Source: Macrostomum hystrix
Taxonomy: Eukaryota; Animalia; Platyhelminthes
Assembly: GCA_950097015.1 (NCBI GenBank)
Contig: CATNEN010000034.1
Coordinates: forward strand, 5,580,001-5,644,000
Direction: 5' to 3'
Length of the DNA stretch: 64,000 nucleotides
Below the pieces are notes generated by a model. That model did no database searches, was not told where the DNA came from, and saw only the letters and a list, made by a program, of their open reading frames with translations. Of this stretch, positions 3,101 to 38,603 are shown piece after piece; the stretch's first letter is position 1; each line of letters starts with the position of its first letter. Both the position numbers and the translations under genes were made by a program.

Positions 3101-5187
3101 TCCTCACCGTATACCAGTAGCGAAGTAACACGAATGACCACTTAGAGGGCGCCAAAGCGGTCCCAGATCGCAGAATGCTCACACAAACCTAGCTTCTCCA
3201 TTAGAGATTTACTCTCGAGTGCCTCCTAAGTCCTAACACAAGGCTTGGCGTACTTATGCAAGAGCTATAAAATCATTGCATAATGATTTGTAGTCACAAT
3301 GTGAAATCTAAAAAAGAGTTACCATTAATGACGCGTTCTATAATGGTATTACAACTTTTGGATTGATTCCAGAAGGTTAACAGGTCGCCAGATTATGAGG
3401 GCAGAATGTTGTAGTAAAAAACTGATATGTTTTATGTACTTCTAAGTAGATCCGATACCTAGGTAGGTATGATTGTCTCTTCTAATTGATACAAATGACT
3501 AAAGATAAAAACGATTTTGGGTGCAGTGAAAATAAGCATTACGCCTGAACAGCAGTATGAATAAATATGCTCGCATGTATTGAATATTTTAGTGCAACTT
3601 ACTTTCTACTAGTAGGTGTTGACTTTTCTGAAGTACAAAGATTTTTACCGATAAGATTGGAATTCACTACAAATGTGTGCAACATATGTGCGACTCGTCT
3701 TTTTAGCCTCCCGCGTTTCCGTCCATCGGTCTAGTTTTCAAGGCATTCAGTTCCCTGTGGCTGCCATTGGACCGAAAAGCTGGACCAATTCTGGGCAGAA
3801 CAGGAGCCAATGTCGGTTCCAAGCCTCCGTTCAGCTTCCCAGATTCCAGCATCAACTCGCTCCTACTAGCTTCTTCTGTTAAATCTCTGGCTTCCATGCT
3901 ACGCAATCGTATTCGCAGCTGCATCACCGCTTGCCAAAATTAGATTTCTTCGCCACTAATTGGGAATATTTCACCTTAAGAAGCATCTAGTTTGTACTCA
4001 TGCGAGGAACGAGAAAGCCTTATTTAACATGATCTAAATATCCAATTTTAAATTTCACATACAAATGAGCCAGGTGCGCTGCGCTTTGAGTTTAACCATG
4101 GATGCGAAACGTAATTAATTAAAATATAAGCTCGTAGTTGTAATTGAATTGATACTTTTATAATTGAGCTTACAATTGAAGCAAATCAATTTGGCCTTTT
4201 GGTTGGAAGTTTTTATCGTACTTCCACATTATTTTGTGTTGGTCGTTGCCTACATGCACGCGCTGTCGAAAGACTCAAACCAGCTTATACAGGATTCATA
4301 TTCAGGTCCTTATACAAGACCTAGAAATAACTTTGATTTCTAGCCCTTGAATTAACCAAGCCCCTGAATCGGGACATTTTCGGATGATAATAAGCTCAAG
4401 ACTTCGTGAAAATATTTCTTTAACAGTTGAGTCTTAGCCATTCAGACTAGAGAAAGAGATGGACTTCTATTGAACCTGCCTTCTTTTAGCTGTCGAAATC
4501 GCCCATTACCTCGTTGCCCATTGTTTACTGTTGCCTCTGTGTCTAGTATGAAAGAGACAGAGAGAGCATTATTTGCTTTCGCTCATCTCGGGCTTCGGTA
4601 TTCGCTTTGTCATTTACCTGGTGGCCACCGCAATGGCATGTGGTTTGAGGTGCGTGCGCGCGTGTTTGCAAGCGAGCACAATGCCAAAGAATTGAATCGT
4701 CACAATTTGTATGCGCGTCGCAGGTAGGTGAGCACTTCAGACCCGACCGGTCTATGCCAGTGAACAATTCAACCCATGGAATGCATCAGAGCCGGGCGCA
4801 AGCGACATCGTTCGAGGGCTTGCTACTCTTATATTTGACGACAATAACTAAAAAACTAAATGAGACTGCGAGAAAAATGAGCGGCGGGTTTTGTTCTGGC
4901 TTGCTAGAATGAAGGCGACTTCGCCTAGTCAGGTTCATCTCTCTCTCTCGCTGTGTGTCTGTGCCTGTGTGGACGCCCATTCATTACGCGCGCATTGATG
5001 CCAGTGAGTTAGTTTCTGGCACACAGAATTTGTCTCCATGCAGTTAGTTACACCGCGGGCAGCTGGCTGTAGCACGGTTAGTGGAGGTGGGTGGGCAAGC
5101 GGGCGAGCCAGTCTTTGGGCACTGTGCATAAAATGCAAGGCGGGCCACGAGAGAGACAGAGCGAGCACAGCGGGCTCAAGCAAAGTC

Positions 5188-8100
5188 ATGAGCAAAGCTG
5201 AGCTGGAGACCCGGGTCCAGCAGTGGCTGGAGGATAACCATGAGATCGTGCATAACCCGCCTCTTGGTGCCAACCAGTGCTCCATCGAGTATGAGAAAGC
5301 CCGACAACGCGGCATCTTTGACGAACTCAACAAGATCGGATCTAAGGTAAAATCTGCACATTTTACACGAATTCAAAATGCTTGTCATTATTGATCATTC
5401 ACAGTAGGTTAATGAGTAGGCTACACTTGCCCCAACATGCAGGACCTTAATCGGCAGGTAAAAGACCAATGCGCGCTAAATGCCAACCGCGTGCGAGACA
5501 ACATCGTGTCCCTGGACTACATCGGCAAGATCGCTGGTCTGGAGGGCTTGTTCTCGGTGAGTAAACTCCGAGCTCTTGAGCAACTAGCTCTTTTATATAC
5601 CTTGAATATTTTTTGCAATCTTGTAATGCTTCTGGACGCCGTTGCAGAAGGCCACGGCGGAATTGCTCGGCACTGCGCATCAATTATCGACGGAGGAGGT
5701 CGAAAATCTGTCCGAAGTGCGCAAACCGCTGCTTGGCTCAGTTCAGCGCTGCTGGCAGTGGGTGGAGCTGCTCTCGACTCTGTCGCGGCTTCACTTGAGG
5801 AACGCAGCGGACTACAACGCCTTCCATGTCGAGTGCCACGATGCGAGAGAACGGCTGACGAGGAACTTTGGACACGCGCTGCGCCAGCAGGAGTGCCTGT
5901 TCCACCTGTCGCACACAGAGAGGACCAAGCGCCTACTAGCCAACCTCACGGTGAGTTGCTCTTCTGCAAAATTTAAGTGGGTCTAAACTGAAGCCACCTA
6001 CAGATATAATACGGTTAATTGTGTTTAGCTTAGTTAACTACTGTGAGATATAAACTGTGAGATATAAATTATAATTCTATGCCATGAGCCCATAACGCCA
6101 CCTGATAAATATAAATAGAAATAGCATCTAACCCAGTTGGGCCAGCCCGTGGCTATTGCGCGGAGCAATTCCAAAGGCTATATAAGTATACAAATGCTCA
6201 GTCCATGAACTCGAGATACAGCCACAGCGTCCCAACCATCCAATTTGCACACCACCTATTTCTAGAACCCGTTTCCCAGTCGGTGGCTGGAACAATGGAG
6301 GTTTCACACACAAATTATATAAATTGGAGCACATCAACACTCGTTTGCCTGAAAATGATACTTTGCTAGTCTGGAAACCAAATTAGTAGCCTCGTCAGTC
6401 AGTTAGTCTAATAGCAGTGCTGAACAGATTCATATGCAATAGCAAATTAGGACTAAAGTGCATATAGTGGACGCGTGTCGTAGTGACTCTCCGTTGGAAG
6501 CATCTTCTAGCAGAGCTCTATAATCTGGAGAGGCTGAGATGATTTTCTTCAGCTTGATTACGTAGAGTTGCTTAGGACGCTGCTCAATCTTCTAAAGTTT
6601 AAATCGGCAGGGAGGGAAAACGAAAGAGCCAGTTTAAAGTTATTCCCCCGCTATAGGAGCTGACTTAGAGCAATTGCAACGCTCTGAAATCTGTTACTTG
6701 GCTTTTGTGTAAGTGCGTGTATCTGAAATATTTGCAAAACAGTGCTTGTACTCGTACCAGCATTTCGCTTTTAGGAGGGCGGTTATGAGCGCGCAACAAG
6801 AGTTCATAACTTCATTTAAACGTTGCTTGTCCTCCGGTTTAAACAAAATGGCCCAGGAAAAAACGACAGTTGACAAACTACATGTATGTCAGTAATATTG
6901 CATACGGCGGCTGTCGCCTAGTGGATATAGCGTCGCCTCACGAATCGGGGTTCGATTCCCGACTCCACTGGAGCAATTTGTGTCCTTTAGCAAGACACTT
7001 CAGCGACCTTTGCTTCAGTTCACCAGCTGTTAAATGGGTACCAGCATGGGAAGCTAGGGTAATTGAGGGTGGGTGTGTGGCGTCCCCACAGTCCATGGAC
7101 TGAAAAGTCGAAAGCAACCTTCAGATGCTCCGCGCAATAGCTTCGACTGTGCTGAACTTTGGCTATACTTATAGTTTGGGCAGGCGTAATCAGTTATCAG
7201 AAAAAAGTCCGAGAGTCTTGGACTCGGGAGAGGTGGATACCAGGAGAGAAGGCCGAGACTAGGACAGAGCCGAGACTAGAAGAGAAAGATAAAGATGGTG
7301 AAAGACTGGGAACTTTGTTATTTGAAATCTTCAAATACCGCTGTCCCTGGCCATATAGGACTCGCTGAAGCACTGCCTGACGGACTGGGAGGCTGTGGAC
7401 CATCTGCTGGCTAAGAGCCACTCCATCGTACCCGTGGCCGAGCGGCTTGGCAAGCCTCGCAACCCATCATTAAAGGCTATTTGCGCTTGCAAGTACGAGA
7501 CTCCAGAGGTGAGTTCGCGTACAAGTGTTCGCGCTCGTTTCTAAGTGGCGATAGCTTTGTCAGTAACCTACGCTATATTAGGTATGGGGCATATACATAC
7601 AAAGTATGTAAATTTCTCTTTAAACTTCAGTTTCGAATCAGTGAGGGTGATGAAGTAGTTCTGCTGGACAACTCGGACAAGCACCTGTGGAGAGTCGCGC
7701 TTGACGACGGCTGCGAAGTCCAGCTGCCCTCCGTCATGGTCTGGATCCCGCCTTGCGACGCGCACAGCGTTGAGAAGGGAATCGGGTGCGTTGTTAATTC
7801 CTTAGCTATTATTTATTTAGAAAGTAATTTCCTTGTGAAAGCAGGCTTCTCGCCCTCAAAGGTGGGCTTTTGCTCCTAGCACGGCAAGAGTGGTAAGTAT
7901 CGCTATTTTAGATGTTTCCATATTGTTGAATCTCTGTTTTGTCTGACAATGAGCTCAACTATCATGTGACCAGAAGTGATAAAGCTATAGTTAGCACAAT
8001 GGAATTTCCGACACTACTTATTCAAATCACTGCCACAGTCTGCGCAAGAAGTTCTCGGACATGTGGACGGATCTACTGGAGAAATTTCGAGTCAGCACTG

Positions 8101-9261
8101 TGGTCCACCTGAACGGCATCTTCAGCCACTTTCTGGATCGTCAAACGGTACGTCTCATTTCTACGCAGGGTTTGTCTAGAAATATAACTATTGTCACAGC
8201 CTTAAAGTACTTTTGTTTGATGCTTGATCGCAACCGTCTCATGGGCAATAGGGGGCGAGGTGACGCATTAATTTTTTATGCAGAAAGCATCAACATATTT
8301 TACACAAGTTGGAAATTATTTTTTTGCTTTAACCCAAGTGCGAAGGTGTTCTTGCAGCTTGGGAGCTAGATGAAGATCTCATCTATTAGGCTAGGTTATT
8401 TGTTCAGTTCACAAATAACCTGAATAAATAGATTAAGATTTAGGCTTCACTTTAGCATACGTACGGTATAAACGATAATACAGTAACATAATAATTATAA
8501 TACGAAAATAATGTAATGACGACCAATACGAAAATTTGATTTCCAGCACGGGGCCATTGAGTATCCCTAAATTAAAATGCATTTTTTCAAAAAGTTTCAC
8601 TCGAAACGTTATCCTATTATGTTTGATTTGTCCCAACTCCAGCCCATTCAGGTGAGCGATCTCAGCAAGGCGCACGAGCTGTTCGAGCTCATCAAGAGCA
8701 CCATCTTGGCCGACGAGCCCACTGATGGAGTGCAGAATCTGGCCCGCCTGCTGGATGAAGTGAAGGCCAGGACCGTTCACAAAGGCGAGAAAGTCTATAA
8801 AAACATTTGAATCGCATTGTGTTCCAGATAAACGAAAGCATTAATTGCGAACTAACATTTTTTTGCAGATCAAGTCAATGCTGCTCTTGGACGAGACCCG
8901 AGACTCAGTAAGGCTAAAAACACTGAAAGTATCACTATTTTTCTTTTCGCATTCTCAGTGAACTTTTTCAGCCCATGTCTTTGCCATTCATTTATTTATG
9001 GTACCCAGAATCAGTTTATTAGTTCCCACCCAACAACAAATAATCAACAGGACCAGAAAATGTGCACTTTCCCTCAACTGAGCTGGTTCGACTACACACA
9101 ATAGTCTCCAAGCTTTGGCAGCATCTCCGGCACTGGACGGAGTTTCAAGAGTCCGGGTCACTGCCGCACTGGTCGCTGCTGCACTGCGTGCAACACGGCA
9201 TCGGCCAGCACAGGGACAGCGGACGACTGGTGCCTCCAGTCAGGAGCGCGGAGGAAATTGA
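5188..9261 (+). CDS. Plakin domain exons (spectrin-like repeats plus inserted SH3) of the giant gene
   Basis: CWQWVELLSTLSRLHLRNAADYNAFH resembles the desmoplakin/plectin W-x-W...HL-x-x-N-A-x-Y-x-x-F motif. KSHSIVPV...KAICACKYE...ISEGDEVVLLDNSDKHLWRV...GCEVQLPSVMVWIPP matches the plakin SH3 (compare desmoplakin RALCDY...KGDECILKDN...W...VPSV...IPPP). No calponin-homology domain seen. Confidence 0.85.
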
Positions 9262-12200
9262 GTAAGTTGCTGCTGAGAAGACACAAGGATCGCAATAAGC
9301 CTAGAGGGGTCGGGGTCACAGGAATAATTCGCTGCCGGAAGAACAGTGTCGTTGCAGATTTCCTGCATGTCTTGCATGACAGCTAGCGTGACAGATGGTG
9401 CAGGTATATTCCGAGCTCATTTTGGAACGCTCAATAATTTGCGCTTTCACTCAGAAAAAAATTAGCTGATGAGGCTAGTTATTCACTTTGTTTGGACTGA
9501 CGTTCTTGAAGGAGACTAAGAGCCTTCGGCAAAGAAGCACAGGCCTTGAAAAGGCCCCACCCGACAAAATCCGCATTAGGAAATTGCACCCTATCCTGCT
9601 TTTGATAGGGATGAAGCTCTGATTTTGAGAGTGATCGAAAAAATCTATCTTCGGCATACAGTAATACTCTGACAGGAGCTCGAAGAAATTTTTGTTTAAT
9701 CAAAGGTCCGCAGGCAGCCGATCCGGCAATGAAGCAAGCAATCAGCTAAATTGAGAGCGCAAAGTTGCTCTCACTGCTATTGTGGGAGATGGGGCGAATC
9801 GAGAGTATTTACAGCTTTTCGTTCCGAGCAGCGATTAAATACCAGAAGGGGCAGAGGGAGCTTCGTCTGTGCTCAAAAGCCTCAGCTCCCGCCTGGTGCT
9901 CTGGGAAGCGCTTGAGAAGACTTGAGCTTCTGCGCGTGTGTTGCCCTTAGTTTCTTCTTGGAATTAAGTGTGGGCGCTCAAGTGTGCGGAGCAGGTGCTA
10001 TACTGCGGATTATTTTTGCCACCTTTACTGGAAGCAGACTCTCAGGATTACGTCCGGGCCCGCTAGATGTTTTGCTGAAAACATCTATTAAACCTGGTTG
10101 TTATCAGCATCTGTTCCTACTTGTGAGACTGGAAAATATGGATACAGGTGTTTTGTGTGCGGATGGATTACTAACCTCATGAATAAGTGGGTCTTCTGGG
10201 CAAGTTTTCAATTCTAAATGTTTTGCGACGCTTTCCTAAATGTTTCTAAAATTTCTGTCATTAACATTTTTTTCGTAACGATAGCCAATGCCCTAAAATG
10301 CCTATTTGGCCAAATAGTTGCGCACACTTTTATGTTTACGCCGCTTAAAAAGAAGAACAACCATGTGTTTTCATATCGTTTCAAAAATCTAGTTCAGTCG
10401 TCACATGGGCGTCCCGATTCCGCATTTTTGCATTAGGGTACTCCTTGATACACAAAACCATGATTTCATGGACTGGAGAAATGAATGTAGCAATCTTAGC
10501 AATTCTAGCACTTCTCGTAGTACTTAGATCTTTCCGAAATATGGATAAACATATAAAAAGTATATTGTATCACAGCTCGAATCATGCTTTGAATGCTTAT
10601 GCTTATGATTACTATTAAGTAGTAAAGTGCAGTTTGTAGTTGATACACCACTGATACACCGCGCAAGAAAACTGTTAAAGTGCAGCTAAAAAGGATCATT
10701 GAAACAATTTTTACAGGCAAAAGCTGGCCCACGGTCAGGATGAACTGAGGAGGCTTCAAAACAGCTTAAACGCCATGACTGGTCCACGTCAGTGTCGAAA
10801 AGATGACGAGCCAATTGCAGCGCCTCCTCTGATTGGCCATCTGGACCTCGGCGATAGTCCTGGATTAGCAGCCAAGCCTATCCGTGCTGCAGCCAGCACA
10901 CAAAGAGACGCGGCTACGGACACCGGCTCGGTGACAGAGCTGTTAATGCAGCTGATGAACGAGCGTCGCGAATTCGCTCGCGCAGCGCTACGCCGCGAAG
11001 CTCGACAACGAGAGACTGCGACACAGACAAGCGGACAAGACAAGCCTGATGGTCCTTCTAGCTGCAGTCAAAGCAATGGCATGGGCGGCTTTGCTCAGGT
11101 TTCTGAGCGAAGTGTTGAGTGCCAACTGGCGCAAGAACAGCTTGCCACCTCTTCGGCTAACGCAGGCTTGTCTCTCGAGAGTACGGCTGCTCATACTCAG
11201 ACAGAGGATAAGCTTTTTGATCTGGAAGAGCCTGCTGTGATAGATAGGCAGAAACTTGCTATGGCTCCACCTGTTGAATCATCCGATGCGCATGTCCTGT
11301 CGGGTCCAACTGGATGGACGCAGTGGGCAGGCCAGGTGGGCGCCGCGTTTTCACAGTTTGCAGATAGTTGCAGTCAGGCCGGAAGCGGCTATTTGAACTC
11401 TGCGCATCAGCAAGTACAAAGCGGCCTAAGTAACTGGCAGACTTGTGACGCATCGGTCATTGCCAGAGATGTTCGTTATTCTGTTACATCAACTTCTCAG
11501 ACGGACTCGGTCGAAAGAGATTTGCTCGAAACTTTCGTTAAATGCCGAACGTTGACGGCTGTTGCGGAGACTCAGTCAAGAGTCGAACAGGCGGTGCAGA
11601 GCTGCCAGGCATCAGTGGACACGCTGCACGCTAGTTTAAGTGCTCACCTAGAGATTGAAAATGCATGTGTTCATATCAGACAGCCAAGTGTAGAAGCCGA
11701 TGCGTGGGTTCACGAAGAGACTTGCGACGCAAGCACCGAGTGCATCCGGATAATTGAGGACGCAGAAAGTGCGTGGACAGTTCCCAGGAAGGATGAAGCA
11801 ATCAGCATTCGGCCGGCTAAAGCGATAACCGTTGATTCTCAGAGCCAAACTTTTGAAGCAGTAACACGAAGGAGCAGCCTAGCAACCCAGTGTAGCATTA
11901 GTGCTTGTGACTCGGCGATACAGAGCGCAGCAGAGACAACCGACTTCGAGGTTCAGATGTCGCCAGAACCAATGCAAGCCAGCAGCACCAGTGTTCATAT
12001 CTCTATAAGTAGCATTGACGGTGGATCACAGACCCACACGACTGATGTAGCTGATGAAGAGACTGAGTACTCAATGTCACTATGCGAGTCCTGGCAGCAA
12101 ACTGAGGCAAGGGCGACAGAAAATTTTGGAATGAGCACAACTTCACAAACAGCAGACGCCGCGTGTCAGAGCCGAATTGCTTGCGTCGAGGCTAACACAG

Positions 12201-15200
12201 AGACGAAAAAAATAACGTCCTACAGCGTACTAGTTCAGATGGCAGTTAAAATGCAAGACGCAAGCACTGAGTCCAGCTGCCAGCTGGCTAGCGATGAAGC
12301 TCAAACGAACGCAAAGCTCATGCGGCATGTGGAAACAGACTACGCCATAGAGATGGTTGATAACCAGATCCAGACTGACGGTGACTTTGAAGAAGAAGTA
12401 GTCGAGACTTATGTGGTACAGCAGCAAGCAATCATGCCTATGGCTACACAAAGCGAGGACTTCGCTTCACAGACGGAAGTTAACACTACAGAATGTTTCG
12501 TCAGAGTCGACCGCCCGGCTTATGCAAATGCAGAAACGGACACAGGCAGAGCCTCCAACCAAGACAGTGTTAAAGCAGAGTACAAAGCAGATGCCCAACA
12601 ATCTAGCGTCAATGCTAGTGTGGCACACGCAGAAGTGGCGACTGCGACGGAGCAAAAGTCCACTGAGTTCGCACTGCAATGGGAACTTACGTGCTCGAAT
12701 AGTAGCACAGAAACAGAGAAAAGCACACTGCTTTGTGAAAGCGTTGGCCTTCAGACTGAAAATAATCAAGTCGAAAAGCTGGAGAAAGAAACTAATTACG
12801 AAGTTTCCTTCGCGAATGCAGCATTTCAAACTCCAAATTTAGAGTACGAAAATGTGCTCACAATCGCTCATGTTATAACTGCCGACAGTAGTTCGCTCTG
12901 CACCATAGAATTGGACAGTTCTGCTTGTCAAACTGAAGACAAGGCGGAAATCATAAGAAGAGATGTAGCCACAGCTGTAGAATGGCAAAGAATTGACAAG
13001 GAATGCATCTGCCATATTGCCATTAGCGATGCCTATCAGCAAACAGATGCAAAAGAATCCGAGGAAAAAGACATGACAACCCAAACAATCACCGAAGCAC
13101 GCGACTCAGTAGTCAAAGTCGGAGCACTTGTTCTGGATGCATCGACACTGACTGACACAGTCGAAGTCCAAACAGCCGACAAGGAGACAGTCTATACATT
13201 GTCAATGAGCGACGCTACTCATCAGACAGAAAGTGAGATGAATCATGCATCGATTGTCATCAGGCCAGACATCGCTGAGGTTGCATCGTTGTGTGCCTGT
13301 GAAAGCTCCGACACCACAACCCAAACAATCACCGAAGCACGCGACTCAGTAGTCAAAGTCGGAGCACTTGTTCTGGATGCATCGACACTGACTGACACAG
13401 TCGAAGTCCAAACAGCCGACAAGGAGACAGTCTATACATTGTCAATGGTTGATAGTGCAGGACAAACCGAAGTCGAGTGCCTAGAGATGGCGACAAGAGT
13501 TGAACCACAAATGGCTGCGAGCGCTTCAATGTGGGACGCCGAATCAAACGACATGTCAACACAGACTCTGTACGAATGCACCGAAACCCTAGTGACAATC
13601 GGATCCACTGTTGAGGATAAAGCAACCGAGATATCATTGCACGTCAGCTGTCAGGAGCAACAGACGGACTCGATTGTTGTTGATACGGCTGAGAAGCAGA
13701 CCGAGTACAACTTGGTGGTCTGCGACGCTACGCTGCAGACTGAGGGCGAGTTGATTCAAGCATTTGCAGTCTTCAAAACAGCCACAAGCGAAACTGCTTC
13801 AGTATGGGAGTGTGAGAGCACAGATATGACAGCCCAAACAATCACCGAAGCACTCGACTCAGTAGTCAAAGTCGGAGCACTTGTTCTGGATGCATCGACA
13901 CTGACTGACACAGTCGAAGTCCAAACAGCCGACAAGGAGACAGTCTATACATTGTCAATGAGCGACGCTACTCATCAGACAGAAAGTGAGATGAATCATG
14001 CATCGATTGTCATCAGGCCAGACGTCGCTGAGGTTGCATCGTTGTGTGCCTGTGAAAGCTCCGACACCACAACCCAAACAATCACCGAAGCACGCGACTC
14101 AGTAGTCAAAGTCGGAGCACTTGTTCTGGATGCATCGACACTGACTGACACAGTCGAAGTCCAAACAGTCGACAAGGAGACAGTCTATACATTGTCAATG
14201 GTTGATAGTGCAGGACAAACCGAAGTCGAGTGCCTAGAGATGGCGACAAGAGTTGAACCACAAATGGCTGCGAGCGCTTCAATGTGGGACGCCGAATCAA
14301 ACGACATGTCAACACAGACTCTGTACGAATGCACCGAAACCCTAGTGACAATCGGATCCACTGTTGAGGATAAAGCAACCGAGATATCATTGCACGTCAG
14401 CTGTCAGGAGCAACAGACGGACTCGATTGTTGTTGATACGGCTGAGAAGCAGACCGAGTACAACTTGGTGGTCTGCGACGCTACGCTGCAGACTGAGGGC
14501 GAGTTGATCCAAGCATTTGCAGTCTTCAAAACAGCCACAAGCGAAACTGCTTCAGTATGGGAGTGTGAGAGCACAGATATGACAGCCCAAACAATCACCG
14601 AAGCACTCGACTCAGTAGTCAAAGTCGGAGCACTTGTTCTGGATGCATCGACACTGACTGACACAGTCGAAGTCCAAACAGCCGACAAGGAGACAGTCTA
14701 TACATTGTCAATGAGCGACGCTACTCATCAGACAGAAAGTGAGATGAATCATGCATCGATTGTCATCAGGCCAGACGTCGCTGAGGTTGCATCGTTGTGT
14801 GCCTGTGAAAGCTCCGACACCACAACCCAAACAATCACCGAAGCACGCGACTCAGTAGTCAAAGTCGGAGCACTTGTTCTGGATGCATCGACACTGACTG
14901 ACACAGTCGAAGTCCAAACAGCCGACAAGGAGACAGTCTATACATTGTCAATGGTTGATAGTGCAGGACAAACCGAAGTCGAGTGCCTAGAGATGGCGAC
15001 AAGAGTTGAACCACAAATGGCTGCGAGCGCTTCAATGTGGGACGCCGAATCAAACGACATGTCAACACAGACTCTGTACGAATGCACCGAAACCCTAGTG
15101 ACAATCGGATCCACTGTTGAGGATAAAGCAACCGAGATATCATTGCACGTCAGCTGTCAGGAGCAACAGACGGACTCGATTGTTGTTGATACGGCTGAGA

Positions 15201-18200
15201 AGCAGACCGAGTACAACTTGGTGGTCTGCGACGTTACGCTGCAGACTGAGGGCGAATTGATTCAAGCATTTGCAGTCTTCAAAACAGCCACAAGCGAAAC
15301 TGCTTCAGTATGGGAGTGTGAGAGCACAGATATGACAGCCCAAACAATCACCGAAGCACTCGACTCAGTAGTCAAAGTCGGAGCACTTGTTCTGGATGCA
15401 TCGACACTGACTGACACAGTCGAAGTCCAAACAGCCGACAAGGAGACAGTCTATACATTGTCAATGAGCGACGCTACTCATCAGACAGAAAGTGAGATGA
15501 ATCATGCATCGATTGTCATCAGGCCAGACGTCGCTGAGGTTGCATCGTTGTGTGCCTGTGAAAGCTCCGACACCACAACCCAAACAATCACCGAAGCACG
15601 CGACTCAGTAGTCAAAGTCGGAGCACTTGTTCTGGATGCATCGACACTGACTGACACAGTCGAAGTCCAAACAGCCGACAAGGAGACAGTCTATACATTG
15701 TCAATGAGCGACGCTACTCATCAGACAGAAAGTGAGATGAATCATGCATCGATTGTCATCAGGCCAGACATCGCTGAGGTTGCATCGTTGTGTGCCTGTG
15801 AAAGCTGCGACACCACAACCCAAACAATCACCGAAGCACGCGACTCAGTAGTCAAAGTCGGAGCACTTGTTCTGGATGCATCGACACTGACTGACACAGT
15901 CGAAGTCCAAACAGCCGACAAGGAGACAGTCTATACATTGTCAATGAGCGACGCTACTCATCAGACAGAAAGTGAGATGAATCATGCATCGATTGTCATC
16001 AGGCCAGACGTCGCTGAGGTTGCATCGTTGTGTGCCTGTGAAAGCTGCGACACCACAACCCAAACAATCACCGAAGCACGCGACTCAGTAGTCAAAGTCG
16101 GAGCACTTGTTCTGGATGCATCGACACTGACTGACACAGTCGAAGTCCAAACAGCCGACAAGGAGACAGTCTATACATTGTCAATGGTTGATAGTGCAGG
16201 ACAAACCGAAGTCGAGTGCCTAGAGATGGCGACAAGAGTTGAACCACAAATGGCTGCGAGCGCTTCAATGTGGGACGCCGAATCAAACGACATGTCAACA
16301 CAGACTCTGTACGAATGCACCGAAACCCTAGTGACAATCGGATCCACTGTTGAGGATAAAGCAACCGAGATATCATTGCACGTCAGCTGTCAGGAGCAAC
16401 AGACGGACTCGATTGTTGTTGATACGGCTGAGAAGCAGACCGAGTACAACTTGGTGGTCTGCGACGCTACGCTGCAGACTGAGGGCGAGTTGATTCAAGC
16501 ATTTGCAGTCTTCAAAACAGCCACAAGCGAAACTGCTTCAGTATGGGAGTGTGAGAGCACAGATATGACAGCCCAAACAATCACCGAAGCACGCGACTCA
16601 GTAGTCAAAGTTGGAGCACTTGTTCTGGATGCATCGACACTGACTGACACAGTCGAAGTCCAAACAGCCGACAAGGAGACAGTCTATACATTGTCAATGA
16701 GCGACGCTACTCATCAGACAGAAAGTGAGATGAATCATGCATCGATTGTCATCAGGCCAGACGTCGCTGAGGTTGCATCGTTGTGTGCCTGTGAAAGCTC
16801 CGACACCACAACCCAAACAATCACCGAAGCACGCGACTCAGTAGTCAAAGTCGGAGCACTTGTTCTGGATGCATCGACACTGACTGACACAGTCGAAGTC
16901 CAAACAGCCGACAAGGAGACAGTCTATACATTGTCAATGGTTGATAGTGCAGGACAAACCGAAGTCGAGTGCCTAGAGATGGCGACAAGAGTTGAACCAC
17001 AAATGGCTGCGAGCGCTTCAATGTGGGACGCCGAATCAAACGACATGTCAACACAGACTCTGTACGAATGCACCGAAACCCTAGTGACAATCGGATCCAC
17101 TGTTGAGGATAAAGCAACCGAGATATCATTGCACGTCAGCTGTCAGGAGCAACAGACGGACTCGATTGTTGTTGATACGGCTGAGAAGCAGACCGAGTAC
17201 AACTTGGTGGTCTGCGACGCTACGCTGCAGACTGAGGGCGAGTTGATTCAAGCATTTGCAGTCTTCAAAACAGCCACAAGCGAAACTGCTTCAGTATGGG
17301 AGTGTGAGAGCACAGATATGACAACCCAAACAATCACCGAAGCACGCGACTCAGTAGTCAAAGTCGGAGCACTTGTTCTGGATGCATCGACACTGACTGA
17401 CACAGTCGAAGTCCAAACAGCCGACATGGAGACAGTCTATACATTGTCAATGAGCGACTGCTACTCATCAGACAGAAAGTGAGATGAATCATGCATCGAT
17501 TGTCATCAGGCCAGACGTCGCTGAGGTTGCATCGTTGTGTGCCTGTGAAAGCTGCGACACCACAACCCAAACAATCACCGAAGCACGCGACTCAGTAGTC
17601 AAAGTCGGAGCACTTGTTCTGGATGCATCGACACTGACTGACACAGTCGAAGTCCAAACAGCCGACAAGGAGACAGTCTATACATTGTCAATGGTTGATA
17701 GTGCAGGACAAACCGAAGTCGAGTGCCTAGAGATGGCGACAAGAGTTGAACCACAAATGGCTGCGAGCGCTTCAATGTGGGACGCCGAATCAAACGACAT
17801 GTCAACACAGACTCTGTACGAATGCACCGAAACCCTAGTGACAATCGGATCCACTGTTGAGGATAAAGCAACCGAGATATCATTGCACGTCAGCTGTCAG
17901 GAGCAACAGACGGACTCGATTGTTGTTGATACGGCTGAGAAGCAGACCGAGTACAACTTGGTGGTCTGCGACGCTACGCTGCAGACTGAGGGCGAGTTGA
18001 TTCAAGCATTTGCAGTCTTCAAAACAGCCACAAGCGAAACTGCTTCAGTATGGGAGTGTGAGAGCACAGATATGACAACCCAAACAATCACCGAAGCACG
18101 CGAGTCAGTAGTCAAAGTTGGAGCACTTGTTCTGGATGCATCGACACTGACTGACACAGTCGAAGTCCAAACAGCCGACAAGGAGACAGTCTATACATTG

Positions 18201-21200
18201 TCAATGAGCGACGCTACTCATCAGACAGAAAGTGAGATGAATCATGCATCGATTGTCATCAGGCCAGACGTCGCTGAGGTTGCATCGTTGTGTGCCTGTG
18301 AAAGCTCCGACACCACAACCCAAACAATCACCGAAGCACGCGACTCAGTAGTCAAAGTCGGAGCACTTGTTCTGGATGCATCGACACTGACTGACACAGT
18401 CGAAGTCCAAACAGCCGACAAGGAGACAGTCTATACATTGTCAATGAGCGACGCTACTCATCAGACAGAAAGTGAGATGAATCATGCATCGATTGTCATC
18501 AGGCCAGACGTCGCTGAGGTTGCATCGTTGTGTGCCTGTGAAAGCTGCGACACCACAACCCAAACAATCACCGAAGCACGCGACTCAGTAGTCAAAGTCG
18601 GAGCACTTGTTCTGGATGCATCGACACTGACTGACACAGTCGAAGTCCAAACAGCCGACAAGGAGACAGTCTATACATTGTCAATGGTTGATAGTGCAGG
18701 ACAAACCGAAGTCGAGTGCCTAGAGATGGCGACAAGAGTTGAACCACAAATGGCTGCGAGCGCTTCAATGTGGGACGCCGAATCAAACGACATGTCAACA
18801 CAGACTCTGTACGAATGCACCGAAACCCTAGTGACAATCGGATCCACTGTTGAGGATAAAGCAACCGAGATATCATTGCACGTCAGCTGTCAGGAGCAAC
18901 AGACGGACTCGATTGTTGTTGATACGGCTGAGAAGCAGACCGAGTACAACTTGGTGGTCTGCGACGCTACGCTGCAGACTGAGGGCGAGTTGATTCAAGC
19001 ATTTGCAGTCTTCAAAACAGCCACAAGCGAAACTGCTTCAGTATGGGAGTGTGAGAGCACAGATATGACAGCCCAAACAATCACCGAAGCACTCGACTCA
19101 GTAGTCAAAGTCGGAGCACTTGTTCTGGATGCATCGACACTGACTGACACAGTCGAAGTCCAAACAGCCGACATGGAGACAGTCTATACATTGTCAATGA
19201 GCGACGCTACTCATCAGACAGAAAGTGAGATGAATCATGCATCGATTGTCATCAGGCCAGACGTCGCTGAGGTTGCATCGTTGTGTGCCTGTGAAAGCTC
19301 CGACACCACAACCCAAACAATCACCGAAGCACGCGACTCAGTAGTCAAAGTCGGAGCACTTGTTCTGGATGCCTCGACACTGACTGACACAGTCGAAGTC
19401 CAAACAGCCGACAAGGAGACAGTCTATACATTGTCAATGGTTGATAGTGCAGGACAAACCGAAGTCGAGTGCCTAGAGATGGCGACAAGAGTTGAACCAC
19501 AAATGGCTGCGAGCGCTTCAAAGTGGGACGCCGAATCAAACGACATGTCAACACAGACTCTGTACGAATGCACCGAAACCCTAGTGACAATCGGATCCAC
19601 TGTTGAGGATAAAGCAACCGAGATATCATTGCACGTCAGCTGTCAGGAGCAACAGACGGACTCGATTGTTGTTGATACGGCTGAGAAGCAGACCGAGTAC
19701 AACTTGGTGGTCTGCGACGCTACGCTGCAGACTGAGGGCGAGTTGATTCAAGCATTTGCAGTCTTCAAAACAGCCACAAGCGAAACTGCTTCAGTATGGG
19801 AGTGTGAGAGCACAGATATGACAGCCCAAACAATCACCGAAGCACTCGACTCAGTAGTCAAAGTTGGAGCACTTGTTCTGGATGCATCGACACTGACTGA
19901 CACAGTCGAAGTCCAAACAGCCGACAAGGAGACAGTCTATACATTGTCAATGAGCGACGCTACTCATCAGACAGAAAGTGAGATGAATCATGCATCGATT
20001 GTCATCAGGCCAGACGTCGCTGAGGTTGCATCGTTGTGTGCCTGTGAAAGCTCCGACACCACAACCCAAACAATCACCGAAGCACACGACTCAGTAGTCA
20101 AAGTCGGAGCACTTGTTCTGGATGCATCGACACTGACTGACACAGTCGAAGTCCAAACAGCCGACAAGGAGACAGTCTATACATTGTCAATGAGCGACGC
20201 TACTCATCAGACAGAAAGTGAGATGAATCATGCATCGATTGTCATCAGGCCAGACGTCGCTGAGGTTGCATCGTTGTGTGCCTGTGAAAGCTCCGACACC
20301 ACAACCCAAACAATCACCGAAGCACACGACTCAGTAGTCAAAGTCGGAGCACTTGTTCTGGATGCATCGACACTGACTGACACAGTCGAAGTCCAAACAG
20401 CCGACAAGGAGACAGTCTATACATTGTCAATGAGCGACGCTACTCATCAGACAGAAAGTGAGATGAATCATGCATCGATTGTCATCAGGCCAGACGTCGC
20501 TGAGGTTGCATCGTTGTGTGCCTGTGAAAGCTCCGACACCACAACCCAAACAATCACCGAAGCACGCGACTCAGTAGTCAAAGTCGGAGCACTTGTTCTG
20601 GATGCCTCGACACTGACTGACTCAGTCGAAGTCCAAACAGCCGACAAGGAGACAGTCTATACATTGTCAATGAGCGACGCTTCTCATCAGACTCAAAATG
20701 TTTCTTTGCAGTCATCTGCCAGGGTTGTCGTTTTGTTGTCCGATCGGAGCACGGAGCCACTATTACTTTTTTCAGTTGCAAGCACTTCTCAACAAACAGA
20801 GTCAACTGTAATCCAGACGGCGGATGGACAGACTGAATACTCATTACAAAATGATCTAAGTGAAACAGTTGCTCAAAAAGAGTGGGAAATTGAGGAAGCG
20901 TTTGTTAAGTGTGCGCCACCTTTAGTTAATGCAATGTGCTGTTGCGCACCTCGAGTTAATGTCGGCAGTAGTCAAGTCAACAGTGCTAGTATTCATGCCA
21001 GTGTCAATTTAAGCATTAGCATGAAAGACGCATCCCAGCAGACAAATCTTTTTTTGAGCAGCAAGCAGAAACAGACTGACTCAAAGGAAGTCTCAACTAT
21101 CGCAACTGACTGCCAGAGCTTTTCCCCAGTGGATTCATTTGTGAAAGTGGGAACTGATATTTCTGACTTTAGTGAACAGACAGAGCAACTGGTTGCTGAT

Positions 21201-23013
21201 TCCAACGCAAAAGTTGGCTGCCAAGTCACGACGAATTATACGGAACCGGTACTCCGTCTTGTTGAAGTGCCTTGTCAAACCGAGTCAATCGAAGTCACCG
21301 AGAAGGCACCTGTTATTATTGAGGAGACTTTGGTGCGCTGCCACTCAGATTTTTGGGCTGAAGCATCAGTCACAGCGGATCCAAAAATATTTCTTATAGA
21401 AGCAGTCTGCCAGACGACAGAACTTCGATGCATAGCCACCGCATCTCAGCATGCGATTGAAGTCGTAAATGAAAACGCCAATGCAATAAAGCAGTTGCGA
21501 AACGTGCAAACAGATGTCACGGACTTACTAGCCAGTCTGGTTAGCGAGGCGGAGGTGAAACACAACTCAGAAGCTGATGAACAAAATCAGATTGATTCTG
21601 TGGATGCACCAGTGCAGAAGCGCTTGTTCAAGTCAGCTTCAGATACTCGCGATACTGCATCGCTGTACTCAGCAGTACGCCAAGAAGACACTGGTTCGCA
21701 TTTCCAGTACCACCCGGAGCTTCATCATCATAGTTTTTCCAACCCGGATATTCAGTTCCACAGCCACTACGCACAAACAGAAATTATCTGCATCCATGAT
21801 GGGCCTATGGTAGATACAGCAACCTCACATCGGGACGATGTACCGAGTAAGAATCAAGTCTGTTAATTTTGTTGCGGGTAAAAATCTGGATTTTGCCTTT
21901 TCCTTTTTTCTTCAGTTTTATCTCTTCGTACCTTTTCTTTATTATTTTTAATATGCTGGATAAATTATGAGCTAGCAGATTTTTTTATCTAGGCTAGCAA
22001 CTGAACAAGAGCATATAACTACATTTTTTCTCAGAGTTCTGCCTGCAATTCTAATGCTCTGCTCCTTTTATATTTTAGGTCTGTCAGACACCTTTTTCAG
22101 TACATCTGCCCAGCCCCATTTGAGCCCATCGGGCCTTCTGAGTCCTGGTCTTATGCTGCGGCTGCGCAGCTCTAAGGAACCGGATTCCGACGGAGAACAG
22201 GTGGTGTCTAGCATGGCCCGCCTTGTTGATCGAGTGCAGCCATCACCGCAGCCGTCACCGATGTCACTACCGCTTTCTCCTGAGCACCAACATCAACAGA
22301 AGCTAAGAGCTGATACAACTGATGATGCTAAACCATTAATGCCTACTGTTTTTTCAAGAAAACAGCAACAGCAGCCGCAGGCTCAACAGTATCAACAACA
22401 GCCTCAGAGTCCGCAATCCTTCCGGCAGCGCCATCTTGGAGTGTCGAATCCCGAAGAATGTGAAGCAACCACCACCACCACTATGTCAGGACCGGTGCCA
22501 GCTTTGGCCTCAGCGTCGGGTCCCATGCAGTCACGAAAAGTTACTCCTGCTGCATCGGGCTTAAAGAGTCCCGGTCTGATGTTCCGACTGCGAAATGAAG
22601 AGGCAGCTGAAGCGGCAGAGCAGCAGAGCATGCTGGCTGAGATGACTCGCGTGGCCGGCCGAATGCCCGGTAGCGGTGGAATTGGCGGCACAGGCAGTGG
22701 TGGCCTTGGACCCCCAATGCCAGTTCCTCGTACACCCTCTGCACCCTCCTCGAGAGGTTCATCGTCTGATGACTCAATGGTGCTGGGTCAGGAGGCTCAG
22801 GGAGTTCAGGCACCACCGCAGCAGGCGCCGCGGCAGGCCCCACATCCTACGGAGGAATTCGAGCTAGCAAGAAAGCGGGCGACTGCAAGGCGCCTTCTAA
22901 GAGAGCAGGAGGAGCGAGATGAAGCAGAGGCCGAGGCGCAGAGGCGCCAGCGTCGAGTTGAACCAGGAGGTGACGCTGGCGTAGGACCGGCCCCTGGGCC
23001 AAGAGAGGCATGA
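5188..23013 (+). CDS. Giant plakin-family protein (~4,478 aa): N-terminal plakin domain with SH3, ~3,700-aa QT-motif repeat region, low-complexity C-terminus
   Basis: Manually assembled exons 5188-5346, 5443-5556, 5648-5950, 7359-7508, 7631-7785, 8039-8147, 8652-8784, 8869-8907, 9051-9261, 10717-21846, 22079-23013. All introns are GT-AG except one GC-AG (8785-8868) and all phases are compatible. Summed length is 13,437 nt (divisible by 3) after removing one inserted base at 17459. A further upstream exon cannot be excluded. Confidence 0.75.
6906..7140 (+). mobile_element. tRNA-derived CORE-like SINE in an intron of the plakin gene
   Basis: A-box TCGCCTAGTGG and B-box GGTTCGATTCC, followed by TGTGTCCTTTAGCAAGACACTT...CTTCAGTTCACCAGCTGTTAAATGGG, which resembles the CORE domain of MIR-type SINEs. 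Confidence 0.65.
10717..21846 (+). CDS. Giant single exon (~11.1 kb, ~3,710 aa), acidic Thr/Ser/Glu-rich, with 11-aa-periodic D-x-x-x-Q-T motifs
   Basis: Acceptor TTTACAG|G at 10716/10717 and donor CCGA|GTAAGA at 21846/21847. ORFs 10775-17482 and 17484-21866 become one frame if the extra T at 17459 is removed. Confidence 0.85.
13082..20690 (+). repeat. Coding higher-order tandem array: 14 A units (240 bp/80 aa), 8 B units (513 bp/171 aa) and a terminal partial unit
   Basis: The shared core QTITEARDSVVKVGALVLDASTLTDTVEVQTADKETVYTLSM recurs at 13082, 13322, 13835, 14075 ... 20547. Order is ABABABAAABABABAABABAAA, and 14x240+8x513+1=7465 matches 20547-13082. Confidence 0.95.
22079..23013 (+). 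CDS. Terminal exon of the plakin-repeat gene; Pro/Gln/Ser-rich with a duplicated SGLxSPGLMxRLR motif
   Basis: Acceptor TATTTTAG|GT at 22078/22079 is phase-compatible with the giant exon donor (A+GT=Ser); open to TGA at 23011-23013. Confidence 0.7.
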
Positions 23014-24990
23014 GTGACTTATTTTTATTTTTGTGTGTTCTTCTAATTCACTGAATAGTATTTTTACCTGAAACTGTAACTGAATAGTTGCGGTAAACGA
23101 ATAATCATGCTTCTCAGAATTTTAAACGGACGCTAGAAACATATAAAATATTTTCGATGACTTTAAAGTACTCAAACATATTTAAGCACATTTACTTTTG
23201 GTACATTGACTGCTCAAGGAAAGTGAGAATTCTTACGTGCTACTCCATTCTCAGTAGACTAACCTGGTCTTTGTTGTATTTTTAGACAATGCTACCTTCT
23301 GTAATAATAATTAGGAATGTTATTATAATGCTCGTTGACTTGAAATATTAACATAAACGCTTACGCCTGTTTTAATTTAGTTTCAAATTAGTAAATAATG
23401 TTCTCGCTCTCATTGGAAATTAGAATTTGACAGTCATAGCGCTAGGTGGTGCATATCTAACAATTACTTCTGCTCCATTATTATACCACCACTAGAACTC
23501 CTCTTGCAACTGCCATGTTAGTTGTTAGTTCCATATTTCTGAGTACTGAGTGAAATATTTAACTGCTACTTTGTCTATACGAATCAATCATTTGTGAAAG
23601 ACACATTATAACAAAATATAAAACCTAGCTAAATATTTTCACACTACGCTTTACGTATAAAACGAAAAGTTTTTTTAATTTATTTGTTTTGTAATTTAGG
23701 TTCCGCTTCATTTTTTCTTACGATTGGACATGGGAAGATCCACATATTTCGGGCGGGCGAGACCGCCATTATGCCGGGCGGGACCGTCATCCATCATGCG
23801 TCATTGCCGCGAAAATGTAAAAAATAAATACCTTCATCTCTTTTATCTTCATTATCCCACTCATTTGTCTACTCTTTATCAAGCGAGCAACACTACCCGA
23901 CAGCGTAATTTGTTTGTATCAAATTCTAATCTAATTAGATCTGGTCGCACCCAAAAGCCTGAGTTATATCATTTTTAGCTTATTGCTGAAATGTAGTCAG
24001 CCACTTGCCGAGTCAGTGCCAGCGTCAAGTTTCTTGTGATGCTTGCAAGCCTTTAGTGATAATCAAAATTGTCACTGATCAGGAGGCTGAAGGAGGCATA
24101 ATGAGCCGCATCGCTGATACTTTTGCTGCACATTTTAACAAAGCAATGACTCACTGCGACTTATTATTCCTCAATAATAAAAGCCGCAATCCTGCCGGCC
24201 GGCTTTGTTAGTTTATGTTTAGCGAACACTTTCGCTGATCCATTAAATATGAATAATATAGGTTCTCAATAAAACCAAGCACCACATAAACACTGAACAA
24301 GACTGACTGCTTGGATATCCATATGATAACACGGAGCCAAGAACCATAAGCACGTTTTAGCCAATTAAAAACGTCTTTCAACGGTTCAGCGTTCTATCTT
24401 AATTGTTTAGATGACCGACACGCAAATCCTGATGTGAAATGAGATCCTTTGGCCTACATTTTCTGTCGAGACATTTGTGTCTTTAGGACAGTAACAAAGA
24501 GTGAATATTACGCTGGCCTAATGCAAACGATGTACGCAGTTAGGTACTTAGCTACATTTATGTAAATAATCATAAAAGCTCAAAGTGAAATAGAACAAAC
24601 ATTTTGGTAGCTTGCTCAGAGCTATTTAATTCAGCATCAGATCAGCACAACGATGTAAAGCTATTTTGAGATCATGAGTATAGGCTTTGCCAATGCTGCA
24701 TGCACTAACTGGCTTACACGTATCAAAAAATCTACTTAAAAGGTGCAATAACAGGTGGCGAACTGGATCTAGCAGAAACCGATTGCTCAGAGAGTAATGT
24801 ATAGCTGAGAGCTTTAGTATACACATGAAATGTATAAAAATGCCATTGAATTATCAATATGGATACTCCTAATAATTTAATTTTAAACTAGATTTTCATT
24901 TGCGATCAGCTATTTAAATACGCTCAATCCATCAAGAATAAAGAGTAAAGAGTATAGAGTAAATCATAAATAATAAAGAGAGCCATTCAG

Positions 24991-38393: not shown

Positions 38394-38580
38394 TGTGTTG
38401 TACTTTTATATGTGTTGTACTTTCATTATATAGAAACTAGTATTTGACCGTTGCAGCTAAATATCCCATAGACAATTCGTTCTACCTGTTTGTTTGCGAG
38501 GACCGCGTTAAGAGTGTTTGCGGCTCTAGCTTTCGTGCTAACCCCGGGCTTTGCTATCTACACAAATACATTAGACCACA
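38394..38580 (+). repeat. 5' LTR (187 bp)
   Basis: Identical to the 3' LTR except for a 2-bp AT indel near the start. Confidence 0.95.
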
Positions 38581-38603
38581 AGCTATCGCGGCAATACGCA
38601 ACG

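Follow-up and report, generated by a model that had tools for sequence, protein, structure and literature searches.

Plakins tie junctions to the cytoskeleton, and the rods and tails they use for this come from few module types. In some spectraplakin isoforms (Drosophila Shot, C. elegans VAB-10A, and MACF1b), a giant exon of plakin repeats comes after the plakin domain. AHNAK/desmoyokin is a one-exon giant of thousands of residues. It is made of near-identical units of ~100 amino acids (aa) with a strand-like periodicity. Proteins of this type have a small N-terminal domain and are linked to the cell cortex and to junctions. The AHNAK repeats are basic and contain proline, and the AHNAK head is a PDZ domain.

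The window analyzed here is a 64,000-nt stretch of DNA from the flatworm Macrostomum hystrix. It contains a lineage-specific plakin variant that is a real gene. Judged from its sequence, the giant exon of this gene appears to be a new kind of plakin rod, made of an orphan and very acidic repeat. Our preferred reading is an expressed 11-exon plakin-family cytolinker with a long, acidic, beta-prone spacer or scaffold rod and a conserved tail. We give this reading about an even chance. Literature searches on the Macrostomum lignano locus and on plakins in Macrostomum or planarians found nothing relevant.

Gene structure and plakin-type head

The features of the gene are listed in Table 1. Nine head exons are spliced into the giant exon at 10717 in transcript contigs from four RNA-type runs, and the reading frame is open from the ATG at 5188 through the head exons into the giant exon. 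Head and giant exon thus belong to one transcript, as the original prediction had it, and its start at 5188 was exact. The introns between exons 1 and 10 are GT..AG throughout, bar one GC..AG. RNA contigs reach 2.4 kb inside the giant exon. Transcription was seen at both gene ends, from RNA contigs at the 5' end and from RNA word share at the 3' end.

The gene had been predicted to end at 21846. This position is exact as an exon end and carries a conserved GTAAG donor, but it is not the gene end, as a conserved exon 11 follows. The gene probably continues past 21846 through this conserved splice. The donor, acceptor, phase, and stop of the exon 10/11 splice are all conserved in L001, and the RNA word share (0.85) is consistent with the intron being spliced out. 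The putative exon 11 is proline/glutamine-rich and contains two SGL-x-SPGLM-x-RLR motifs and a charged C-terminal helix. Its conserved, non-acidic 310-aa tail may form a second attachment end. With exon 11 the gene has 11 exons, and the protein would be 4,481 aa without the extra T at 17459.

Table 1. Features of the plakin-type gene, in window positions
Feature	Position	Strand	Content and evidence
Exon 1	5168..5346	+	RNA contigs begin 5168-5175; start codon 5188
Exon 2	5443..5556	+	Head, helical; joint 5346>5443 GT..AG, 4 runs
Exon 3	5648..5950	+	Head, spectrin-like helices; joints; desmoplakin/plectin PDB alignment via homolog P0001
Exon 4	7359..7508	+	Helix end and SH3 start; joints; SH3_10 via homolog's spliced head
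Exon 5	7631..7785	+	Bulk of plakin-type SH3; PF17902 E 4.9e-10; 3r6n match
Exon 6	8039..8147	+	Head; RNA joints
Exon 7	8643..8784	+	Head; donor GC instead of GT; RNA joints
Exon 8	8869..8907	+	Micro-exon, 39 nt; RNA joints
Exon 9	9051..9261	+	Final head exon; joint 9261>10717, 4 runs
Exon 10 (giant)	10717..21846	+	11,130 nt, ~3,710 codons; ORFs, RNA contigs, conserved donor at 21846
Exon 10 unique N flank	10717..12906	+	729 aa, 13 QT, short conserved islands; P0001 comparison
Exon 10 tandem array	12907..20806	+	14 A and 8 B units and decaying end copies
Extra T	17459..17459	+	Frame break, stop 17480-17482; compared with 13 intact copies
Exon 10 unique C flank	20807..21846	+	9 QT; final 35 codons highly conserved
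Exon 11 (putative)	22079..23013	+	310 aa; donor, acceptor, phase, stop conserved in L001; RNA word share

The head is N-terminal and ~460 aa long. A plakin/SH3 head had been predicted, and a profile check of the head exons had been proposed. The check found SH3_10 (PF17902), the only Pfam family there, above its cut-off of 22.8 bits. The match was E 4.9e-10 and 39.8 bits on exon 5 (profile positions 25-65) and E 1.1e-14 and 54.7 bits on the spliced head of the M. lignano homolog P0001 (profile positions 1-65). Structure matches across the SH3 domain were to desmoplakin (3r6n; E 8e-10) and plectin (3pe0; E 6e-7). These alignments, made via P0001, contain ~100 residues of helices before the SH3 and ~35 after it. 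The AlphaFold model of the head has long helices on either side of the SH3, with a pLDDT of only 41. None of the Pfam spectrin-repeat models scored on the homolog's spliced head. The closest database relative of the head is a desmoplakin-like fish protein (21% identity), and the transcript has no calponin-homology actin-binding domain upstream.

The N-terminal 460 aa are probably a shortened desmoplakin-type plakin domain with its SH3 embedded in spectrin-like helices. By analogy with desmoplakin, plectin, and BPAG1e, it would anchor the protein at a junction or at a membrane complex.

The giant exon and its repeats

The array spans 7.9 kb. Unit A (240 nt, 80 aa) occurs 14 times and unit B (513 nt, 171 aa) 8 times. 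They are arranged as ABABABAAABABABAABABAAA, with a decaying copy at the end. Nucleotide identity is 98.3% among A copies and 99.7% among B copies. The giant-exon repeats are acidic, and T, V, E, and D are abundant in them. The net charge is about -440 for exon 10 and ~-0.14 per residue for the array. The array is 30% hydrophobic and 34% beta-formers, with hardly any proline or glycine. In a charge-hydropathy plot it falls on the ordered side, and its hydrophobicity equals that of the folded head.

The original prediction described the giant exon as one exon with one open frame. It is a single exon, but the frame is broken. One of the 14 A copies carries an extra T at 17459, where the unit spacing is 241 nt instead of 240, and the shifted frame runs into a stop at 17480-17482. 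If real, this frameshift would truncate the protein. The stop could mark a pseudogene, with the gene broken or decaying, or it could be an assembly artifact from an array collapsed or expanded by the assembler. Copies that are 99 to 100% identical are difficult to assemble, and the array of the M. lignano homolog likewise has several frame changes. However, the frame is open for 4.4 kb beyond the shift, in phase with exon 11 and the conserved stop. Both gene ends are transcribed, and purifying selection is evident. We consider a broken gene or an artifact very unlikely.

The claim that no coiled-coil or spectrin rod follows the head agreed with the beta-prone, acidic composition and with the lack of any Pfam family in 3,700 aa. 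By eye, only short helices of ~30 aa were visible in the giant exon, and no long coiled coil was evident. SH3_10 was the sole Pfam family in the search, which covered all head exons, exon 11, the array, and the two flanks. Weak Pfam matches in the array (Bact_transglu_N, Epiplasmin, and others) were rejected as summed repeat noise, with no single significant stretch. Pfam gave no match to plakin repeats (PF00681) or GAS2/EF in exon 10 or exon 11. A diverged plakin repeat was rejected because the profile comparison (hhalign) with the desmoplakin-like protein gave a probability of 0.1%. ESM Atlas look-alikes for A-B-A, exon 11, and the N flank were all <0.9, with low recognition, and gave no leads.

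Among 1.84 billion representative proteins, the sole relative of the giant exon is P0001 of M. lignano. A word-based homolog search with the exon-10 flank gave no match. The P0001 locus is collinear with the gene described here, exon 11 included. It carries an array of its own with a 195-aa unit, so the arrays expand independently in each copy. The N flank is 48% identical to P0001, with very few indels. Against P0001, pN is 0.33 and pS is 0.72 in the exon-10 flank, and pN is 0.12 and pS is 0.57 in the head. Exon 10 evolves ~2.7 times faster than the head. Purifying selection is evident on both the head and the flank.

The hydrophobic class is conserved at 67% of flank positions, compared with a background of 28%. 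Conserved flank residues cluster in short islands; Q, P, and G are kept best and aromatics worst. A hydrophobic core would be a poorer match to this Q/P/G pattern than motif islands within a disordered chain. Structure prediction of the repeat gave no confident autonomous fold (AlphaFold2, A-B-A segment as a single chain; mean pLDDT 32), with a shallow alignment of 4 rows from 2 genes. The absence of a confident fold also fits disorder.

The region could be a disordered acidic spacer or entropic spring, with its recurring D-x-x-x-Q-T-E/D serving as linear motifs for another partner or as modification sites. The low pLDDT, the short islands, the faster evolution of the exon, the net charge, and the lack of a family in Pfam or the Atlas are consistent with this. 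The 30% hydrophobic content, the near absence of proline and glycine, and the ordered side of the plot argue against it, as do the very few indels at 48% identity and the conserved hydrophobic pattern. We regard a disordered spacer as possible but rather unlikely.

In our preferred reading, the giant lineage-specific exon would stand in place of the usual rod of coiled coil, spectrin repeats, or plakin repeats. It would serve as a structural spacer or scaffold that is long, strongly acidic, and beta-prone. Each module of ~33 aa may consist of short amphipathic, strand-like hydrophobic runs, then an acidic D-x-x-x-Q-T-E/D cap. The modules are probably grouped as the 80-aa and 171-aa units, which appear recently amplified and homogenized. 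Selection may act on the length of the region and on the D-x-x-x-Q-T-E/D modules. The modules may pack on each other, or each may offer a docking site, repeated many times, to a candidate partner.

The QT motif and LC8

The giant exon contains about 125 copies of QT, where roughly 30 are expected. There are 103 in the array (22 expected; z 20), 13 in the N flank (5.7 expected; z 3.4), and 9 in the C flank (2.1 expected; z 5.2). The predicted 98 copies in the perfect array were recovered (14x3 + 8x7 = 98), and the enrichment in both flanks supports the claim that the unique sequence keeps the pattern. In P0001, 11/16 QT sites are kept, compared with 25% of all dipeptides (p 2.4e-4). After removal of duplicates, the motif logo has D at -4 (p 2e-10) and D/E at +2 (p 2e-7), with hydrophobic residues enriched at -8 and -6. 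The conserved repeat motif is D-x-x-x-Q-T-E/D. By its enrichment and conservation, QT appears to be a selected motif.

An 11-residue period had been claimed for the repeat. The QT spacings are 29, 18, and 33 in the A unit and 29, 18, 33, 33, 12, 13, and 33 in the B unit, and the sub-repeat is ~33 aa. These spacings of 12 to 33 give no such period, and the unit lengths of 80 and 171 are no multiples of 11. Hydrophobicity power is at background at period 11 (z -0.8, 0.8, 0.2) and high at period 13 (z 9). The proposed geometry of one LC8 per 11-residue strand is unsupported because no 11-residue period exists.

The QT sites were originally read as multivalent LC8 (DYNLL) sites. The LC8 dimers would pair and stiffen two parallel chains, replacing the coiled-coil rod. 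The published consensus is [D/S]-4 K-3 x-2 [T/V/I]-1 Q0 [T/V]+1 [D/E]+2 (PMC3078936), and I/L at +2 of TQT is a non-binder category (PMC6607443). The proposed LC8-motif prediction over the giant exon gave a mixed result: 23/126 QT sites pass the coded rules (PMC6607443), and 58/126 fail at most one. A [T/V/I]-Q-T anchor is present in 53/126 sites. The flanks are partly LC8-like, in that D at -4 and D/E at +2 are as in the consensus (PMC3078936; PMC6607443), but positions -1 and -3 have no preference. T/V/I at the buried position -1 is at background, 31% compared with 28% here and 26% compared with 24% in the homolog (non-duplicate sites; p 0.39 and 0.50). Nor is K/R above background at -3, where the most frequent residues are A, T, and S. 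Residue +2 of the TQT sites is I or L, and residue -1 of the QT-E/D sites is H, G, K, Q, or L.

One TQT per B-type unit is kept in the homolog (NDMSTQTL and SDIATQTA), but DTVEVQTA, the only array site type that passes all rules, is TIEIERSD there. The enriched and conserved QT core and a pLDDT of 32 are compatible with LC8 sites in a disordered chain, and no long coiled coil was evident by eye to dimerize the protein. However, LC8 binds disordered chains (PMC12057147), whereas the array is as hydrophobic as the folded head and has no 11-residue register. An LC8 rod can arise in KANK1 from weak, noncanonical sites numbering 15 or more (PMC12803091). The LC8 idea is weakened yet tenable because multivalent clients such as KANK1 tolerate noncanonical anchors (PMC12803091). 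We consider it unlikely.

A broader form, in which LC8 or another dimeric hub binds D-x-x-x-Q-T-E/D at 50 or more sites and zips the array into a micrometer-scale rod, we consider distinctly unlikely. We estimate the fully extended length of ~3,700 residues at ~1.2 um (0.34 nm per residue). If true, no known LC8 client would come near it in multivalency, and it would replace the classical plakin coiled-coil rod.

Comparison with known systems

LC8 clients such as ASCIZ, Nup159, and the KANK1 linker L2 have many Q-T-centered motifs, and those of the flatworm protein are spaced at 12 to 33 residues. Flatworm motifs share D at -4 and D/E at +2 with the clients. They differ in being ~10 times more numerous, in the absence of the LC8 preferences at -1 and -3, and in surroundings that are hydrophobic and beta-prone, not clearly disordered. 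KANK1 makes the LC8-stiffened rod a real mechanism in a cytoskeletal adaptor (PMC12803091). Should the motif be bound by LC8 or another hub, the protein would be an extreme natural test case of the recent KANK1 proposal (PMC12803091), in which multivalency turns a disordered chain into a rigid rod.

D-x-x-x-Q-T-E/D is a compact, conserved motif. Its partner is open to a direct search in M. lignano, a species with established methods for RNA interference and in situ hybridization.

The plakin domain of desmoplakin, plectin, and envoplakin has a plakin-type SH3 (PF17902) between spectrin-like helices, and the flatworm head probably has the same arrangement. Desmoplakin has no calponin-homology domain upstream, and neither does the flatworm transcript. 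Compared with desmoplakin and plectin, the flatworm head is only ~460 aa, roughly the repeats around the SH3, at 21 to 23% identity. Unlike these plakins, the protein has no evident coiled-coil rod, and it has no plakin repeats or GAR/EF tail. The plakin head is retained and an orphan repeat takes the place of everything else. Among the 1.84 billion representative proteins, this repeat is confined to Macrostomum. The plakin domain can thus recombine with a completely different long spacer.

The layout is similar to that of AHNAK, with no sequence relation; the flatworm repeats are acidic and the head is of the plakin type. As in the spectraplakins with a giant plakin-repeat exon, one very large repeat exon follows the plakin domain, but the flatworm repeats have no PF00681 match and are acidic and T/V/E/D-rich.

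Gene structure and neighboring elements

A single gene occupies the plus strand from 5168 to 23013. Logan contigs of unrecorded kind, apparently RNA, were taken from four runs in a single 2020 study and placed on 4950-10949. Each run gave one contig of ~3.8 kb that joins ten blocks (4/4 runs), and exon ends were set by fitting the contig cuts to the splice consensus. Eight of the introns between exons 1 and 10 are GT..AG and one is GC..AG. The spliced frame contains no stop from the ATG at 5188 into the giant open reading frame (ORF). The head (the product of exons 1-9) and the giant exon (exon 10) are therefore on one transcript. The contigs reach 2.4 kb into the giant exon and end ~30 nt inside the first perfect repeat unit, which is typical of short-read assemblies. 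The original prediction named separate genes for the plakin exons and the giant exon as its refutation; contigs from four runs join the two.

Features of the plus-strand gene and the retroelement
Feature	Position	Strand	Basis or content
Exon 1	5168-5346	+	contig block, splice consensus
Exon 2	5443-5556	+	contig block, splice consensus
Exon 3	5648-5950	+	contig block, splice consensus
Exon 4	7359-7508	+	contig block, splice consensus
Exon 5	7631-7785	+	contig block, splice consensus
Exon 6	8039-8147	+	contig block, splice consensus
Exon 7	8643-8784	+	contig block, splice consensus
Exon 8	8869-8907	+	contig block, splice consensus
Exon 9	9051-9261	+	contig block, splice consensus
Exon 10 start	10717 onwards	+	contig block, splice consensus
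Exon 10	10717-21846	+	unique N flank, array, C flank
Exon 10 N flank		+	729 aa, non-repeated
Exon 10 array	12907-20806	+	14 A units of 240 nt (80 aa), 8 B units of 513 nt (171 aa)
Exon 10 C flank		+	350 aa, non-repeated
LTR-type retroelement	38490-42424	+	gag ORF and pol ORF domains

The giant exon has a single relative among 1.84 billion representative proteins, which were searched exhaustively with HMMER. This relative is P0001, a partial hypothetical protein from Macrostomum lignano (GCA_002269645.1). Collinearity between the window and its locus, L001, extends over exons 1-11. The two copies are old, since synonymous sites are saturated (pS 0.57-0.72). Between them pN is 0.12 in the head and 0.33 in the exon 10 flank, and both regions are under purifying selection.

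The gene had been predicted to end at 21846. This position is exact as the end of exon 10, with a conserved GTAAG donor at the very point where similarity to the homolog ends in both protein and DNA, but the gene appears to continue into a further exon, exon 11. The homolog locus shares the acceptor at 22079, the phase, and the stop at 23011-23013. Sampled words of 21600-23300 were present in the four runs at 0.85, against ~0.86 expected if the 232-nt intron alone were missing. With the putative 21846/22079 splice and without one extra T in the array, the sequence from the ATG at 5188 to the stop at 23011 spans 13,443 nt (4,481 codons). The exon 11 tail (22079-23010, plus strand) encodes two SGL-x-SPGLM-x-RLR copies and a charged helix (EFELARKRATARRLLREQEERDEAEAEAQRR), both kept in the homolog. 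It matched no known family in Pfam or the ESM Atlas.

The window also contains mobile elements. The retroelement encodes two CCHC zinc knuckles in its gag ORF and an aspartyl protease, a reverse transcriptase, an RNase H-like domain, and an integrase in its pol ORF. Within the pol ORF, the protease and reverse transcriptase are separated by ESPVSCPAGEV repeats, encoded by a 33-bp tandem repeat of 7.8 copies (39755-40013, plus strand). The element is flanked by arrays of ~1.4 kb at 36984-38393 and 42639-44069 with a common 23-bp unit (~61 copies each), which possibly lie within its terminal repeats. On the minus strand, 48143-57653 contains four near-identical ORFs for a C-terminal portion of a Pif1-type helicase, recognized by its Pif1 2B domain (E 2.6e-19). 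They lie within a tandemly duplicated segment, in which a GGGCGCCAGCGGCCGAAAAA 20-mer cluster is also repeated. They are probably Helitron-like fragments.

The plakin-type head

The head is 460 aa long and includes a plakin-type SH3 domain. The predicted plakin/SH3 identity was borne out by a Pfam profile search, in which PF17902 matched the window exon alone (E 4.9e-10) and the full profile matched the spliced head of the homolog (E 1.1e-14). The homolog head is 78% identical to the window head. Its residues 121-318 match the desmoplakin plakin-domain structure 3r6n (E 8e-10), and it also matches the plectin structure 3pe0 (E 6e-7). Its top relative in a large protein collection was a fish desmoplakin-like protein with 21% identity. 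The best-kept residues are F, C, W, and L, the conservation order expected for a fold. AlphaFold, given two rows of alignment, produced a poor model (pLDDT 41) with long helices followed by an SH3-sized strand block and more helices. The transcript contains no calponin-homology exon upstream of the head.

The giant exon and its QT motifs

The array has the unit order ABABABAAABABABAABABAAA, then a decaying last copy. Mean nucleotide identity between copies is 98.3% for A and 99.7% for B. Both units are composed of modules of ~33 aa, such as ESEMNHASIVIRPDIAEVASLCACESSDTTTQT, EVECLEMATRVEPQMAASASMWDAESNDMSTQT, and EGELIQAFAVFKTATSETASVWECESTDMTTQT. Spacings between Gln-Thr (QT) dipeptides are 29/18/33 for A units and 29/18/33/33/12/13/33 for B units. 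The 11-residue period proposed originally is absent: neither 80 nor 171 is divisible by 11, QT spacings range from 12 to 33, and hydrophobicity has power at ~13 and none at 11.

The exon had also been read as a single frame. At 17459 one copy reads GAC-T-GCT where 13 others read GACGCT, and this extra T changes the frame and leads to a stop at 17480-17482. In this assembly the single frame is broken at this base, and the next 4.4 kb is open in the new frame. If the T is real, the protein would be cut short at ~2,715 aa. The giant exon of the homolog is broken into four ORFs by frame changes within its array (L001 14555-15723). From this, such arrays seem prone to errors in long-read assemblies, a point relevant to the extra T.

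The predicted abundance of QT was confirmed. The array contains 103 QT dipeptides against 22 expected by composition (z 20). The flanks are also enriched, with 13 against 5.7 in the N flank (z 3.4) and 9 against 2.1 in the C flank (z 5.2). The homolog keeps 11 of 16 flank QT sites, against 24.6% of all dipeptides (p 2.4e-4), and Q is among the top-conserved residues of the exon 10 flank. The homolog array differs, with a 195-aa unit, and retains GQTE, TQT, QQTD, and LQT at homologous places. By enrichment, conservation, and independent arrays, the QT pattern is real and selected. Because each paralog has homogenized a unit of its own, selection appears to target module number and motif, not exact sequence. 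With Q as position 0, the de-duplicated motif has hydrophobic residues at -8 and -6, D at -4 (43%, p 2e-10), QT, and D/E at +2 (52-68% of sites, p 2e-7 and 6e-6).

The start of exon 10 (10770-11010, plus strand) encodes strongly conserved short islands, DEPxAAPPLIGHLDLG and DAATDTGSxTELLMQL..ERR.FAR.ALRR, in a faster-evolving stretch. They are candidate docking motifs separate from QT.

Proposed LC8 binding and comparison with known systems

The QT motifs are unlikely to be LC8 binding sites. The LC8 consensus has D/S at -4, K at -3, x at -2, T/V/I at -1, Q at 0, T/V at +1, and D/E at +2 (PMC3078936). Positions -1 and +1 are buried and require mid-sized hydrogen-bonding or hydrophobic residues; P, D, or E is favored and hydrophobic residues are disfavored at +2, large or basic residues are favored at -3, and a polar contact such as D is favored at -4 (PMC6607443). 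The motif shares QT, D at -4, and D/E at +2 with this consensus, but T/V/I at -1 is at background (31% against 28%, p 0.39; homolog 26% against 24%) and there is no preference at -3. The PMC6607443 rules were coded crudely and scored over 126 QT sites. A [T/V/I]QT anchor was present in 53, at most one rule failed in 58, and all rules passed in 23; the predicted LC8 motif is matched only in part. All but one of these 23 are copies of one array site (DTVEVQTA 21, DSVEVQTA 1), which is TIEIERSD in the homolog; the remaining one, EDFASQTE, lies in the N flank. At +2 the TQT sites carry I or L, and at -1 the conserved QT-E/D sites carry G, H, K, Q, or L.

LC8 targets are disordered chains (PMC12057147). 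The array may be disordered, as AlphaFold found no confident fold from a four-row alignment (pLDDT 32) and flank conservation falls in short islands. However, the array matches the folded head in hydrophobicity and falls on the ordered side of a charge-hydropathy plot, 30% of residues are hydrophobic, and P/G is almost absent. Against the homolog, hydrophobic class is retained at 67% of positions with eight small indels only and 48% identity. In favor of LC8, no long coiled coil for dimerization was seen by eye. In KANK1, at least 15 weak noncanonical sites suffice for an LC8 rod with ~16-17 residues per LC8 (PMC12803091). Taken together, the LC8 idea is weakened yet survives. It loses the geometry of one LC8 per 11-residue strand, as no such register is present.

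The protein is read as a plakin-family cytolinker. Its desmoplakin-like head would, as inferred from the family, dock at a junctional or membrane complex. The conserved non-acidic exon 11 tail is probably the other attachment end. The giant acidic repeat would be a long beta-prone spacer or scaffold, with a strand-plus-D-x-x-x-Q-T-E/D module as its putative functional unit. The modules may pack together, remain disordered, or bind a partner.

A literature search found no publication on this protein, and a Pfam search found no Plectin repeat, spectrin rod, GAR, or EF match. A relation of the repeat profile to a desmoplakin-like protein was rejected (hhalign probability 0.1%). The protein is similar to multivalent LC8 clients in its core motif. 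It shares with plakins the SH3 in the plakin domain but is without every known plakin rod or tail module. Spectraplakin isoforms likewise have a giant repeat exon after the plakin domain, and AHNAK is alike in overall design.
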